From sequence record PV029745.1: a stretch of 64,000 bases of DNA; one strand, given 5' to 3'. This document shows, in pieces, positions 2,231 to 24,585 of the stretch. The position numbers and the translations under genes were made by a program. Every line of letters starts with the position of its first letter. Position 1 is the first letter of the stretch. The notes below the pieces were generated by a model. It made no database searches, had not been told where the DNA came from, and saw only the letters and a list, made by a program, of their open reading frames with translations.

Positions 2231-2725
2231 TTAAGCTCTTTGACCTAAAGAACATTGTTGTTCAAGTCGACGTTTCTCTTTCTTAACATTCGGTTTAGAG
2301 GGACGTGTAACAATTCGGTAACTATCCACACCTGCACGAATCAAACCACGGATAATTGGATTAACCTTAGATACTTTTAGCGCCTCATAGAAGATATGGT
2401 CTATCTCTTTTCGAGTTACCTTAACTTCTGTCTCTTTCCCATCTACCATCTGGAAGATAGTGTATGTCTCACAAAGCTTATCATGCAACGCTGCTGCCTG
2501 ACCATGCTTACCTAATCGAGGGATCAACCAACGTACTGGCCGTGGAATAGATGCACCATCTGTTAGGAAACATTTATTAACAACTGCGTATTTACCAGAG
2601 CCTTCACTTCCAATGTCATATTGAAAGGTCTCCATAATCCGCCAGTAGTCATCACCCAGAATAACAGATGCATCATCGTCATACTGGATAGACATCTTGG
2701 CATTAAACTTAGTATAGCTACTCAT
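2231..2725 (-). CDS. DUF1353-family protein
   Basis: FLTDGASIPR...AAALHD motif typical of DUF1353. Confidence 0.8.
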   Translation of the reverse strand: MSSYTKFNAKMSIQYDDDASVILGDDYWRIMETFQYDIGSEGSGKYAVVNKCFLTDGASIPRPVRWLIPRLGKHGQAAALHDKLCETYTIFQMVDGKETEVKVTRKEIDHIFYEALKVSKVNPIIRGLIRAGVDSYRIVTRPSKPNVKKEKRRLEQQCSLGQRA

Positions 2726-2756
2726 TTACAATCTCCGTTAACCACAGAGGATTGGG

Positions 2757-3278
2757 TTAACGTCTTGCCCAGTATTGCAAACTATATCCAAGACCTGGAT
2801 TACGGGGAGCGTTAGTTACACCTTTCTGACAGGAAATGAATCGCCATTTGATCGGATCAATGTATTCTTCAAACTTAGCAATTTCAGTTACGTCGTCGGA
2901 AGAACAATCAATGTCCATATCCACAACCGTGCGATAGAACTCACTGCAACGAGAGAGACCATCTTTAAATAGTCGTTCTCCACCAATGATAAAAACTTTC
3001 TTTTCATTTTGAGATAATTCCAATGCTTCATCTAGAGATTTAACATGGATATACCCATCACCTTTCAAATTGCCATTAGAAGATAGAACGTAGTTAGTAC
3101 GACCTGGAAGAGGTTTATTACCAAGAGACTCCCAGGTCTTTCGTCCCATTATAACCGCATGTCCCAAAGTCTTCTCTTTGAACCATTTAAAATCTTCAGG
3201 GATATGCCATGGGATATTTCCATTGATTCCAATAATGCCATTGGTAGACACAGCAAAAATCATTGCTAAAGTGGGCAT
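2757..3278 (-). CDS. folA: Dihydrofolate reductase
   Basis: IGINGNIPWHIPEDFKWFK, VIMGRKTW, PLPGRTN and FIIGG DHFR motifs. Confidence 0.96.
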   Translation of the reverse strand: MPTLAMIFAVSTNGIIGINGNIPWHIPEDFKWFKEKTLGHAVIMGRKTWESLGNKPLPGRTNYVLSSNGNLKGDGYIHVKSLDEALELSQNEKKVFIIGGERLFKDGLSRCSEFYRTVVDMDIDCSSDDVTEIAKFEEYIDPIKWRFISCQKGVTNAPRNPGLGYSLQYWARR

Positions 3279-3289
3279 GACTAACTCAC

Positions 3290-3871
3290 TTACTCTGCGA
3301 ACTTAACATTGAAAGAGAAGGGTGTCCAATGGAACGTATATTCCACATCAAAGGTACCACGGAAAACAGCACACTCCTCGTGTAGATTAGCGATGCAATG
3401 ACTCAAAGCAATCTGTTGTAGAATACTGAATTGATTAAGAGAGAACTCAAACTCTTTTTTACTAATCGTGGAAGACGGATCAAAGTCAGGATGTCCATCA
3501 ACTGTCGATTTATGTGCCAGCGTACCACGGAAAATAGCTTTATTACCAGTGGGAAGGACATCGATAAAATATTCGGTAATTACAAATCCTTTCTCTCCAA
3601 CTTCCTTAAGATCCTCTAGCAGATATTGCGTGATAAGGAATAGTTGTGGCGGGAGTTCGAGTGAAGGGTGCTTACCAGTGATGGTATCAATGAGGCTAGT
3701 GATTTGACTGAAATGAAGTGAATGAACAACACCGTCATTATCAAGAATAGAGAGTTCATGCGAAATCATCGTTTCGCTCTCACCCTCAGCTTGATGTTCA
3801 AAAATAAGACCTTTTGTGATCTTATCAAATTTATCCATGGTATCTACAAACGGGTAATTAACAGCGGTCAT
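3290..3871 (-). CDS. chmB: ChmB-like nuclear shell pore / capsid-docking protein (PA1C gp2 / 201phi2-1 gp2 family)
   Basis: 193 aa starting MTAVNYPFVDTMDKFDKITKGLIFEHQAEG, which I recall as near-identical to PA1C gp2. Position beside DHFR fits phiKZ-like gene order. Recall only; needs BLAST. Confidence 0.75.
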   Translation of the reverse strand: MTAVNYPFVDTMDKFDKITKGLIFEHQAEGESETMISHELSILDNDGVVHSLHFSQITSLIDTITGKHPSLELPPQLFLITQYLLEDLKEVGEKGFVITEYFIDVLPTGNKAIFRGTLAHKSTVDGHPDFDPSSTISKKEFEFSLNQFSILQQIALSHCIANLHEECAVFRGTFDVEYTFHWTPFSFNVKFAE

Positions 3872-9190: not shown

Positions 9191-9350
9191 CTTACCAGCT
9201 ATGTAATGATATGTAGAGATGTCACTCCTCATCTTTACTAGGATCACAGCGCGCCGGAGCCAGCAACCCTTCCAGCTGGCTTCTAGGAAGTAAGACTCCC
9301 TGTTGTGATCCCCTCCTTTCAGTTGGTAAGTTGTATCTTTCTCCTTGTTG
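9191..9350 (+). ncRNA. Candidate structured ncRNA with anti-SD-like motifs
   Basis: ORF-free; nested helices 9191-9200/9321-9330, 9241-9250/9302-9311, 9256-9264/9275-9283; terminator at 9367. Confidence 0.5.
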
Positions 9351-9429: not shown

Positions 9430-9515
9430 GCCCGGTTGGTGAAATTGGTAGTACACAAGAGACTTAAAATCTCTCGGCGAAAGCCGTGTCGGTTCGAGTC
9501 CGACACCGGGTACCA
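9430..9515 (+). tRNA. tRNA-Leu (anticodon TAA)
   Basis: GCCCGGT/ACCGGGT acceptor, AGAGA-CTTAAAA-TCTCT anticodon arm, long V arm, GGTTCGAGTCC, encoded CCA. Confidence 0.96.
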
Positions 9516-22493: not shown

Positions 22494-23171
22494 TTACCTA
22501 TTTACGATATTAACTGGGCGTGGTTTAGAGTTAACCGAAATCTTTTTCACTGCTCGACTAGCAACCCAATGACGTGCACGATCACTAAGGTCGTTGTCAC
22601 GTGTGAGTATATTAGATTCAGCATTCCAGTGGTCAAACCGCCTACCCAAAACGGGATAATGTGCTTGCGCTAGAACCATACATTCCAACGGACTCAGTTT
22701 GTTCTCAGCCGAGGTGAATACATTATTCAGCAGTTCAACCGCTACAGCGCATCCAAAGATGATTGGTTTCCGTGCAGGCGTGGAATAATAATTGCTCCTA
22801 AACATGTCATGGGTTGATTCGAACACATGAAGAACATTATCCTCATCGATGAGGATGTATTCGGCATTAGGCGTAAGCAGGTGTTGGAAATTCTTTGCGG
22901 TCTCTGCTAGACTATGTACATCATCTCCTGTCTCCAAGAAATTCAACCAGCAATGACGATGTTCCGTATCACCAACCATTGTAAATGCTTTTATAGCTCG
23001 ACCCCAGACTTTAGCTTCCCATTTGTTCTCAGAAGCAAGATAAATCTTAGACTTGTCCAGTTCCACGTAGTATGGTTGTGGTGTACCATCCTCTCCAGTG
23101 ATATCGCTCTGGGTGATCGTAGTAACTCGATCAACCAAAAGATCCTTACCATCCCATATGACAATAGTCAT
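22494..23171 (-). CDS. Ntn-hydrolase / proteasome-beta-like protein
   Basis: MTIVIWDGKDLLVDR resembles phage MTTIAWDG..LAAD proteins; Thr2 would be the nucleophile. Confidence 0.45.
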   Translation of the reverse strand: MTIVIWDGKDLLVDRVTTITQSDITGEDGTPQPYYVELDKSKIYLASENKWEAKVWGRAIKAFTMVGDTEHRHCWLNFLETGDDVHSLAETAKNFQHLLTPNAEYILIDEDNVLHVFESTHDMFRSNYYSTPARKPIIFGCAVAVELLNNVFTSAENKLSPLECMVLAQAHYPVLGRRFDHWNAESNILTRDNDLSDRARHWVASRAVKKISVNSKPRPVNIVNR

Positions 23172-23204: not shown

Positions 23205-23232
23205 AATAAAACCCGCTCCTCAACGGAGCGGG
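23205..23232 (-). terminator. Intrinsic terminator
   Basis: Minus strand CCCGCTCC-gttga-GGAGCGGG-TTTTATT. Confidence 0.8.
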
Positions 23233-23244
23233 CTATTCGTTAGA

Positions 23245-23572
23245 TTACCTTACCAGAAAGCTGGCCAGCTAAGGCACCGATTACGGGTCGGCACCCATCT
23301 GGTTAGGTAACGCCACTCGGGGATACCCCTCTCAACTGGAGGTAGTAACCGTCGTAACTTCAGATATAAAGACGGCCAAGTCAATATACCTGCTTCGGCT
23401 TGATCCTTTGGCATGGATCGCTGTTATTCTCTCCGATCTTATGCGGAGAGAGCCCACTTACACCGAAAGCTAGTGGGAATAAGGTGAGGTCACTGCGGCA
23501 CCCTAATATGGCGACGGGGAGCCTTAGGGGAGATGATCCGGGTGACCTCTGTTCTGTTGGGACATTAGTCCT
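23245..23572 (-). ncRNA. Candidate large structured ncRNA (about 330 nt)
   Basis: No credible ORF; about 10 helices; upstream motif GTAATGATATACG (23585-23573) and downstream terminator. Confidence 0.6.
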
Positions 23573-23600
23573 CGTATATCATTACAACTCAAGTATTCTT

Positions 23601-24131
23601 TTACGAGAGTTTAACTTCTACGTCAACTGACTCAAGACCAGCCCCGTTTCTTTTATTAGATCCACGTGCTAGCAGGTAACGAGACCAGGTCTCCGCTTGC
23701 ACTCGGTCAAACTTAAAGTAGATATGCTGCATGATCATCTTACTCAGGTCAGCGATTTCTTTCGACACCATATCAAAGAACAGGTCTTTGTCCATTACGT
23801 CAGCATCATAACGAGCCAGCTCAACGTTGCAATACTGTGCTTTCACTTTATCATAGAACTCAACAGCAGGTTCTTGATGAAAGTAATGGACTTTGTTATC
23901 TTTGATTTCGATACCATGGAGAGTGATCTCGATGTGGTTGCTATGATAGAAATGTTCACGCATAGCTTTATTAAACTCTTCCACCATCTTATCCAGATGG
24001 ATACCTCTAATAACCTCTTTGGTAGTGAATAGATAATTGCCATTTGGATCAACGTATTGTTCGCGCGCCCAAAGACAGCACAGACCAATAGGAATGATCT
24101 CAGTGGGGATACGTAGATCACTGAGCTGCAT
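23601..24131 (-). CDS. Hypothetical protein
   Basis: Start chosen from GGAG SD. Confidence 0.7.
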   Translation of the reverse strand: MQLSDLRIPTEIIPIGLCCLWAREQYVDPNGNYLFTTKEVIRGIHLDKMVEEFNKAMREHFYHSNHIEITLHGIEIKDNKVHYFHQEPAVEFYDKVKAQYCNVELARYDADVMDKDLFFDMVSKEIADLSKMIMQHIYFKFDRVQAETWSRYLLARGSNKRNGAGLESVDVEVKLS

Positions 24132-24585
24132 CGAGTTGCTCCTTCTTTGCATGGATGGATTTGGTTATGATAGTACGTCGTTCGCTTGCTGCATTGGACA
24201 TTATTGTAATTTGTTCTTGCATTTGAGTAAACAGCAAAAGTTCCAACATGGTGAGCAGCATATGCTCAATCCAGAGACGTACACACACCTTGTTCATAGG
24301 GGCAGTGTAATTGAGAGGCTGGACGACCTTAGCAAGTGCGCCAGTCAGCGGGCAGGTAAAGCAGATATGTAGATTCTCGCTATCGCTATCTTCTGCCCAG
24401 TGAACATCTTCTCCCTCGCCATGTACCATATTCGTTACATGGACAACCGGCTGATGCTCAAATGCTTCGGGATGAGGAGTCGTGCCTTTCTCCGCGCATT
24501 GATCAAGATAGATATCGCGAATGACAGCCGTAAGCTCAGCTGGCTCAAGAGACGGCATAAAAGGGAATTTAAGAGTTACTGCCAT
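24118..24585 (-). CDS. Hypothetical protein
   Basis: Start chosen from AGGA SD. Confidence 0.7.
   Translation of the reverse strand: MAVTLKFPFMPSLEPAELTAVIRDIYLDQCAEKGTTPHPEAFEHQPVVHVTNMVHGEGEDVHWAEDSDSENLHICFTCPLTGALAKVVQPLNYTAPMNKVCVRLWIEHMLLTMLELLLFTQMQEQITIMSNAASERRTIITKSIHAKKEQLDAAQ

Follow-up and report, generated by a model that had tools for sequence, protein, structure and literature searches.

The locus and its transcription unit

The stretch of DNA analysed here, 64,000 nucleotides (nt) from sequence record PV029745.1 and referred to below as the window, carries on its minus strand a structured RNA, which sits in a 429-nt gap between two minus-strand open reading frames (ORFs) at 23601-24152 and 22494-23171. 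The RNA is real and strongly supported, and it is the long variant of a family of Pseudomonas jumbo phages. Over 501 bases the locus is 100% identical, at the same coordinates, to Pseudomonas phage phiHQ, and the same comparison yields 95-99.8% identity with BRkr, HHBS36_1, PS119XW, PA1C and phiLBG22, and 89% with HPP-Temi, all of them P. aeruginosa jumbo phages of about 300 kilobases (kb). phiHQ is a PA1C/PS119XW-like phage; PS119XW and HPP-Temi are filed under Pawinskivirus, and PA1C is treated in the literature as a nucleus-forming phage. The features of the locus are collected in Table 1.

Table 1. Features of the phiHQ RNA locus, in coordinates of the window (nt, nucleotides; aa, amino acids; bp, base pairs).
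Feature	Position	Strand	Evidence
Promoter of phiKZ 'middle' type: A-rich stretch, TACT, then GTAATGATATACG	23573..23595	minus	motif kept in all homologs
Inferred RNA, ~368 nt, long form of the family	23205..23572	minus	ends by homology to the mapped phiKZ transcription start and termination sites
5' hairpin GGAC-UAAU-GUCC	23560..23571	minus	PhiPA3 has GGAA...UUCC at the same place (compensatory C-G to A-U)
D1, conserved 74-nt core in the 5' part of the RNA	23478..23551	minus	covariance model R1
Hairpin H2, loop with invariant CUUUCGGUGUA	23453..23477	minus	stem covaries between Pawinskivirus and PhiPA3
Hairpin H3, UCUCUCCG / CGGAGAGA	23428..23451	minus	pairs despite different sequences
Hairpin H4, then invariant single-stranded CCGAAGC	23392..23421	minus	7/7 pairs in PhiPA3, with different sequence
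Hairpin H5, loop with UGG	23362..23391	minus	11/11 pairs in L144 and 10/11 in Viktualia, unrelated sequences
Junction domain closed by GUUAC / GUGGC	23312..23358	minus	5/5 pairs in all six sequences
3' three-way domain H7: long closing helix, one hairpin, palindromic hairpin GCUGGCCAGC	23245..23310	minus	
Intrinsic terminator, 9-bp GC-rich stem then UUUUAUU	23205..23234	minus	terminator scan
Spacer of 33 nt, terminator to start codon	23172..23204	minus	read from sequence
First operon gene, 225 aa, homolog of phiKZ gp289 and PhiPA3 gp355	22494..23171	minus	protein homology

The original prediction, made from the sequence alone, had described a heavily base-paired and self-contained transcription unit of about 330 nt, richer in GC than its flanks and with no ORF. 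A structured unit running from promoter to terminator on the minus strand is indeed found, its length being about 368 nt (23572 to 23205) rather than 330. The GC content is as anticipated, 52.2% in the RNA segment vs 42-43% in both flanking genes and in the whole window, and no conserved ORF was found, since those of at least 25 aa shift in position and length even among close relatives within the genus. Folding of the minus strand of the segment gives -147.8 kcal/mol (z = -5.1), a value that none of 100 dinucleotide shuffles equals, while the fold of the plus strand is weaker (z = -3.3). Both long pairings that had been proposed hold, 23245-57 with 23298-310 (12 of 13 positions pair) and 23486-93 with 23542-49 (8 of 8), and the shorter CTCTCCG/CGGAGAG, CCCACT/AGTGGG and GATCC/GGATC arms are present as well. 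The proposed CCGTC/GACGG hairpin had to be abandoned, as it is not kept in PhiPA3 and clashes with the covarying helix H5.

The RNA matches no family in Rfam, whether the window is searched at gathering thresholds, the region with E values as high as 10 or six homologous loci with E values as high as 1; the only hits, obtained in the region, are terminator look-alikes far below threshold. None of RNase P, tmRNA, 6S, SRP, group I/II introns, OLE, GOLLD, ROOL, raiA, HEARO, riboswitches or EAR reaches the Rfam threshold, in line with the earlier failure to recognize an RNase P, tmRNA, SRP, 6S or group I/II core.

Concerning the promoter, the prediction had pointed to a motif ahead of the unit that resembled those before 9203 and before a transfer RNA (tRNA) gene, tRNA-Thr. 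This motif, which reads CGTATATCATTAC in plus-strand letters and occupies 23573-85, belongs to the longer TACYn6GTAATnnTAT, and with at most one mismatch the latter lies just upstream of tRNA genes at 9193-9212, 11840-59, 14689-708, 17599-618 and 19469-88. For the middle-type promoter, a TACT motif some 22 nt upstream of the transcription start has been described (Wicke 2021). At the other end, the strong terminator that had been predicted corresponds to the intrinsic terminator of Table 1, the stem of which covaries in PhiPA3 and HPP-Temi. As judged by alignment of promoter and terminator with their phiKZ counterparts, the RNA would start at 23572 and end at about 23205. In PS119XW (L015) the loop of the terminator hairpin (homologous to 23217-23223) is inverted with respect to phiHQ, CCGTTGAGG vs CCTCAACGG, with the stem unchanged.

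The spacer that follows holds a Shine-Dalgarno sequence, AGGAGA, at 23181-86 and a terminator-tail motif, UUUAUUCCGU, that overlaps the U-tract of the terminator; a promoter motif was not found in it. Since the terminator ends 34 nt before the start codon and leaves no room for a promoter, the RNA is also the 5' leader of the next gene, and the combination of a Shine-Dalgarno sequence with no promoter motif implies that the operon is expressed by read-through.

A conserved core domain, D1

The 5' part of the RNA folds into D1, which is built from helices P1 (8 bp), P2 (3 bp), P3 (6 bp) and P4 (3 bp). Its 8-nt internal loop ends in an invariant AUCUC that faces an invariant UG bulge, its hairpin loop ends in an invariant CCCGUC, and its C-rich tail reads ACCUUAUU in phiHQ and ACCUAUU in many members, CCUA being common to most relatives. 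A covariance model derived from five D1 sequences (R1) recovers D1 of phiHQ with 98.8 bits and E = 1.4e-25 (23478-23551), the sole match in the 64 kb, and scores D1 of phiKZ with 96.7 bits.

When the downstream protein was used as query, phiKZ gp289 and related proteins came up, and the 74-nt D1 was found upstream of each. R1 also finds D1 in the named phages RVTF4, Psa21, D6, Viktualia and 201phi2-1, as well as on several 200-310-kb metagenomic or IMG/VR contigs brought in by a degenerate pattern scan. Altogether at least 10 lineages of Pseudomonas jumbo phages possess D1, each genome having a single copy. A bacterial origin was considered and rejected, since among the 80 matches listed by a pattern scan of bacterial and archaeal genomes no locus passes R1 (best E = 0.08) and the matches look like chance; as far as seen D1 RNA is confined to Pseudomonas-type jumbo phages.

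The D1 structure is supported by extensive covariation. The homolog search and covariation analysis that the prediction had called for were productive, blastn leading to PhiPA3 and the D1 alignment then revealing changes on both sides in 17 of its 20 pairs. In this alignment of 16 distinct sequences 96.1% of the cells are paired; none of 500 shuffles does as well, and the signal is gone when the partners are slid by 1-3 columns. The single-sequence folds of seven lineages agree on the same architecture.

The position of D1 is also fixed, i.e. it always stands in the leader, with a terminator and a Shine-Dalgarno sequence behind it and then an operon, in which a gp289-like gene is present in all lineages but one with readable downstream DNA. 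The phiHQ RNA shows these family features, with the middle-type promoter motif upstream, the intrinsic terminator downstream on the same strand, and its place as leader of a gp289-like operon.

Short and long forms of the family

Family members come in two sizes. In the short form, found in phiKZ, SL2, U5, RVTF4, Psa21, D6 and several contigs, D1 is followed by 12-14 nt and the terminator, whereas the long form, found in phiHQ, PhiPA3, Viktualia, contig L144 and 201phi2-1, has D1 and terminator separated by a further structured stretch of about 250 nt. A second covariance model, built only from the Pawinskivirus and PhiPA3 extensions (R2), matches 201phi2-1 (E = 1.7e-9), Viktualia (E = 0.002-0.009) and L144 (E = 0.04-0.06), each match being full-length and directly adjoining the D1 of that phage. 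By this sequence and structure criterion the extension is homologous across genera in phiHQ, PhiPA3, 201phi2-1, Viktualia and L144. Two further contigs, L021 and L026, also carry long inserts between D1 and the terminator; these were considered as homologs of the phiHQ extension and rejected, as R2 misses both and only short words are in common. The insert of L021, an AT-rich Logan contig (SRR8512233), is about 200 nt long, AT-rich and divergent, and has a perfect palindrome, GUGGUACCAC, where others have GCUGGCCAGC; at 2317-3675 of the same contig two tandem proteasome-like paralogs lie behind the D1 leader.

Sensitive blastn shows PhiPA3 to be 78% identical over 158 nt of the 5' half of the RNA, with the downstream proteins 33% identical, and in HPP-Temi the RNA region is 92% and the downstream protein 79% identical. 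Identity is thus higher in the RNA than in the neighbouring protein, which indicates that this non-coding DNA is under stronger constraint than its neighbours.

The helices of the extension are supported at two levels. Between paired lineages covariation is seen in H2, H4, H7 and the terminator, and across the R2-fitted alignment H3, H5 and the GUUAC/GURGC closing helix of the junction domain stay paired although their sequences differ considerably. H3 retains 8 of 8 pairs in PhiPA3 and 7 of 8 in both Viktualia and L144. The junction closing helix shows a C-G to U-A change in Viktualia, with the GUUAC/GURGC pairing kept, and the closing helix of H7 shows at least three compensatory changes in HPP-Temi; Viktualia and L144 share the H7 architecture and its palindrome.

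Unpaired stretches are conserved as well. The invariant unpaired words of the RNA are CUUUCGGU, CCGAAGC and GAAGUUA, and an invariant GAAGUUACGACG begins at 23361, 3 nt upstream of the junction domain. Pawinskivirus, PhiPA3, Viktualia, L144 and 201phi2-1 all have CCGAAGC unchanged, and the loop sequence of H2 is retained in Viktualia, L144 and 201phi2-1 although the local stem is absent there. UUUCGG of the H2 loop, which is complementary to CCGAAG, may pair with it in a long-range helix; neither sequence ever varies.

Two other pairings were considered and dropped. H5 shows a 9-bp match to the ribosome-binding site of the next gene in phiHQ, which by eye is not kept in HPP-Temi or PhiPA3 and, being unconserved, was treated as chance. 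The D1 loop (CCGUCG) could pair with an invariant CGACG of the extension over 5-6 bp in phiHQ, PhiPA3 and Viktualia and over 3-4 bp in L144 and L026; this pairing is unproven and unconserved, and cannot account for the conservation of the loop in the short forms.

The homologous transcript of phiKZ

The short form has been seen as a transcript. In phiKZ, ONT-cappable-seq data (Putzeys et al., Microlife 2024, bioRxiv 10.1101/2023.10.13.562163), place the start of promoter P130, classed as a middle promoter, at 263172 and the intrinsic terminator T119 at 263292. The two delimit TU198, a 120-nt transcription unit (263172-263292) with no annotated feature, and the supplement tabulates the interval as a '5'UTR-derived ncRNA candidate', i.e. 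a non-coding RNA (ncRNA) candidate from a 5' untranslated region (5'UTR), upstream of PHIKZ289. The longest read from the start at 263172 reaches 264292, inside PHIKZ289, and according to the same source most 5'UTR terminators of these phages yield either a short RNA or a full-length mRNA (bioRxiv 10.1101/2023.10.13.562163).

The TU198 interval coincides exactly with D1 plus terminator of phiKZ. TU198 and the phiHQ RNA are homologous and have in common the promoter motif, a D1 with covarying helices, the terminator arrangement and the downstream gene family; the former is 120 nt of D1 and terminator, whereas the latter has in addition the hairpin at its 5' end and, between D1 and terminator, some 250 nt with conserved helices. 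In the accessible parts of Putzeys et al., TU198 is a table row, with no family, covariation structure or function given, and our literature search found no paper that treats the RNA as a family, gives its structure or its long form, or mentions gp289. The phiHQ RNA represents the long form of this family, and the short member from phiKZ had been detected as a transcript but left unanalysed.

These data refine the original prediction in two respects. It had spoken of an undescribed ncRNA, which stands for the family and the long form, on which no paper was found, whereas the phiKZ homolog of the 5' domain already figures as a 120-nt candidate in the tabulated part of that study. It had also spoken of a self-contained unit, and while the RNA does run from promoter to terminator, it is at the same time the 5' leader of the next gene, with phiKZ reads running into PHIKZ289. 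As grounds for giving up the prediction its author had named the lack of covariation, a known Rfam family or the lack of a discrete transcript; what was found is covariation, no Rfam family and, for the phiKZ homolog, a discrete transcript.

The downstream operon and its proteasome-like protein

The first gene of the operon belongs to a family annotated as 'hypothetical' everywhere, and sequence comparison of its product with Pfam, PHROG functions and PDB gives no match. An AlphaFold2 model of the product, with eight homologs, reaches a predicted local distance difference test (pLDDT) of 79 and a predicted template-modelling score (pTM) of 0.78, and the top 50 PDB matches obtained with Foldseek are all 20S proteasome subunits (probability 0.99-1.00, E ~1e-4, template-modelling score ~0.5). 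Every gp289-like homolog starts with M-T or M-S, and a Thr or Ser directly after the initiator Met is as expected for an N-terminal-nucleophile (Ntn) hydrolase. The modelled fold of the gp289-like protein is hence predicted to be that of proteasome subunits, i.e. the Ntn-hydrolase alpha-beta-beta-alpha sandwich. Its structural relatives in BFVD include many uncharacterised jumbo-phage proteins, from Pseudomonas, Erwinia, Ralstonia and Vibrio phages.

RNA and gp289-like gene are syntenic in Pawinskivirus, PhiPA3, phiKZ, RVTF4, Psa21, D6, Viktualia and several metagenomic contigs. In a maximum-likelihood tree, 15 gp289-like homologs fall into two clades (support 98/97) that coincide exactly with the long- and short-form RNAs. 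201phi2-1 (L282 2513-2900, 3093-4680) has the long RNA as well as the genes that it shares with Viktualia, and a gp289-like gene is not detectable in the operon, where the gp427 homolog is followed by the next small gene that is conserved. In the phiHQ operon, the 177-aa gene shows no similarity to phiKZ gp290.

Some records annotate coding sequences on the RNA itself. Small ones lie over it in HPP-Temi (L012 1541-1758) and Viktualia (L010 1086-1536), and the annotated 5' end of 201phi2-1 gp425 (L282 2817-2880) overlies it; all of these are probably spurious, and the real start of gp425 is likely the ATG after the terminator and Shine-Dalgarno sequence.

A proposed leader RNA with a conditional terminator

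Taking this evidence together, we propose, with moderate confidence, that the phiHQ RNA is a structured leader, one of a family of such RNAs in the phiKZ-like, nucleus-forming jumbo phages of Pseudomonas, and that it works by conditional termination. On the minus strand, the RNA polymerase of the phage would begin at about 23572, from the middle-type promoter, and the transcript would fold into D1 and then into the roughly 250 nt of further conserved helices. On meeting the intrinsic terminator that ends at about 23205 most transcripts would stop and accumulate as a stable ncRNA, while a fraction would read through, the only evident route by which the operon behind it is expressed. D1 and its invariant unpaired nucleotides would serve as a platform on which a bound effector, possibly a protein, a small molecule or the polymerase itself, sets the ratio of termination to read-through; we infer that termination is conditional in this sense.

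The arrangement of the locus suits this model, and the reads of phiKZ that enter PHIKZ289 fit expression of the operon by read-through. A further hint comes from the short forms, in which the 3' strand of P3 pairs with the 5' strand of the phage's own terminator at -8.2 kcal/mol, vs -6.6 kcal/mol for the terminators of other phages (permutation p ~0.01, for sequences that are related and not independent).

Several points weigh against the model. This antiterminator signal supports attenuation weakly, given the relatedness of the sequences, and a convincing alternative pairing was not found for the long form. The 250-nt multi-helix extension far exceeds what an attenuator needs, and a promoter type shared with tRNA genes fits a stable RNA made for its own sake. 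The RNA has no known ligand or binding protein, and its presence in 201phi2-1 with no gp289-like gene implies that it does not depend on that protein. Finally, the transcript evidence is that of the phiKZ short form, so promoter class, start, stop and read-through are observed in a homolog of the long form.

In its layout of promoter, structured sensor, intrinsic terminator, ribosome-binding site and gene, the phiHQ RNA resembles attenuating leaders and riboswitches such as the T-box, ribosomal-protein leaders and PyrR-type leaders, which, like the D1 family, give a short terminated RNA and a read-through mRNA from one start site. It differs from them in having no curated-family match, no known effector and, in the long form, no clear mutually exclusive structure, and also in being transcribed by the phage's own non-canonical polymerase, by which the middle genes of phiKZ are transcribed. 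The put element of phage HK022, a processive-antitermination RNA, offers another likeness, being phage-encoded, promoter-proximal, about 70 nt in size, structured and located upstream of terminators. EAR, a bacterial processive-antitermination RNA, is likewise promoter-proximal, structured and upstream of terminators, whereas D1 has no similarity to the EAR model in Rfam.

Alternative explanations

The main competitor of the leader model is a stable RNA that acts in trans, as a regulator, scaffold or sponge, and is made for its own sake, the leader position being incidental and read-through mere leakage. The C-rich unpaired segments AUCUCC, CCCGUC and CACCU could then base-pair with ribosome-binding sites, which are rich in purines, or a protein of host or phage could be held by the fold. 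The retention of the long form in 201phi2-1, where the gp289-like gene is not found, speaks for it, as do the promoter motif in common with tRNA genes, the size and conservation of the extension, a 3' end made of terminator and U-tail as in bacterial small RNAs, and the entry of the phiKZ short form as a 120-nt unit of its own and ncRNA candidate. Yet the leader position is fixed in every lineage, the downstream gene has no independent promoter, no target or partner is known, and the invariant architecture of the internal loop in D1 is more than a seed for pairing would require. On balance we regard this as a serious but tentative alternative. The original prediction had suggested a protein sponge, decoy or scaffold, and nothing in the analysis argues specifically for such a role. 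A leader or attenuator and a mainly trans-acting RNA are not mutually exclusive, and the size and conservation of the extension, together with the tRNA-type promoter, keep a role in trans open for the terminated RNA.

A bolder combination would see in D1 a new class of RNA switch of nucleus-forming jumbo phages, which binds a small molecule or acts on the non-canonical polymerase to override termination, and in the 370-nt long form a ribonucleoprotein core or a catalytic RNA with its own role in infection; we consider it unlikely. Large RNAs with many covarying helices are rare, and the ones that have been studied usually do something sophisticated. OLE, GOLLD, ROOL, raiA and HEARO resemble the phiHQ RNA in measuring several hundred nt, in their many covarying helices and in their conserved unpaired stretches, and some of them occur in phages, whereas the phiHQ RNA is matched by no covariance model of theirs, always stands in the leader and is confined, as far as seen, to Pseudomonas-type jumbo phages.

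Alternatively, the effector may be the proteasome-like protein itself, which would bind D1, and in its own clade also the extension, to shut its own operon, or would form a ribonucleoprotein with the terminated RNA. Synteny of RNA and gene across lineages and the exact match between long and short RNAs and the two protein clades speak for it. The match is, however, also accounted for by co-inheritance of neighbours along one tree, the predicted proteasome-subunit fold has no known role in RNA binding, and 201phi2-1 has the RNA while the gene is undetectable in its operon, which makes this reading rather improbable.

That D1 is the aptamer of a new small-molecule riboswitch seems more doubtful again. 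Its compact covarying fold, the invariant loop nucleotides, the terminator directly next to it in the short forms and the weak terminator/antiterminator signal count in its favour, whereas no Rfam riboswitch model matches, the downstream genes give no metabolic clue, no bacterial-genome match passes R1 among the 80 listed, and in the long forms 250 nt separate the 'aptamer' from the terminator.

The notion that the segment is no functional RNA and is instead a gene for a small protein, a mobile element in decay or a spacer rich in GC, for which the small coding sequences in the HPP-Temi, Viktualia and 201phi2-1 records might be cited, is for practical purposes already refuted by ORFs that are unconserved in frame, position and length, pervasive compensatory base-pair changes, better conservation of the RNA than of the flanking proteins, the transcript seen in phiKZ and the lack of repeats.

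Two more specific identities were tried and rejected. Type III toxin-antitoxin systems (ToxIN) share with the phiHQ locus the order of RNA gene, terminator and protein gene, whereas Tandem Repeats Finder finds no tandem repeats here and the fold of the protein is proteasome-like and not that of an endoribonuclease. Mimicry of 5S ribosomal RNA or of the 16S 3' domain had been suggested by ribosomal-RNA-like words noticed by eye (GCCGAAGC, GAAGUUAC, GGGGUAUCCCC, CCCGUC, CACCU); in local alignments of eight members with E. coli 16S, 23S and 5S all z values against shuffles were at most 1.3.

Significance

The regulatory RNA of nucleus-forming jumbo phages is almost unexplored, and their middle and late genes use an unusual polymerase of their own. 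With covariation of textbook grade, a fixed position, two size classes that track the protein clade and one member detected experimentally, the D1 family offers a concrete handle on the control of termination and read-through for a phage polymerase, and lets the presence of riboswitch-like or autoregulatory RNA elements in these phages be tested. It also flags an unannotated family of proteasome-like genes in them.

Additional observations

The taxonomy line of record PV029745 (phiHQ) reads Chimalliviridae; Phikzvirus, although the studied region is 98.5-99% identical to that of PS119XW, the type member of Pawinskivirus. The genes upstream of the RNA in phiHQ and PhiPA3 are unrelated; that of PhiPA3, gp354 (L001 3157-3561, 134 aa), is annotated as 'putative phage integrase', a name that looks unfounded since the protein has no Pfam or PHROG match. 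The promoter-motif copy at 9193-9212 is separated from tRNA-Leu at 9430 by about 218 nt, which could hold another RNA.

A final point concerns the tail of the terminator. The motif TTTATKCCGY occurs 10 times in the window, vs 0.5 expected, at 12, 2222, 12083, 12771, 19710, 23201, 24552, 25301, 29146 and 31788. The CCGUC after the terminator of the RNA, which had been considered as a second binding site, was rejected as such, as it belongs to this general terminator-tail motif of the phage. At the sites inspected, i.e. the RNA and the ends of tRNA-Asn and tRNA-Asp, the motif stands directly after a terminator or gene end, and terminator T120 of phiKZ carries the same tail, so TTTATKCCGY looks like an extended terminator signature of these phages.

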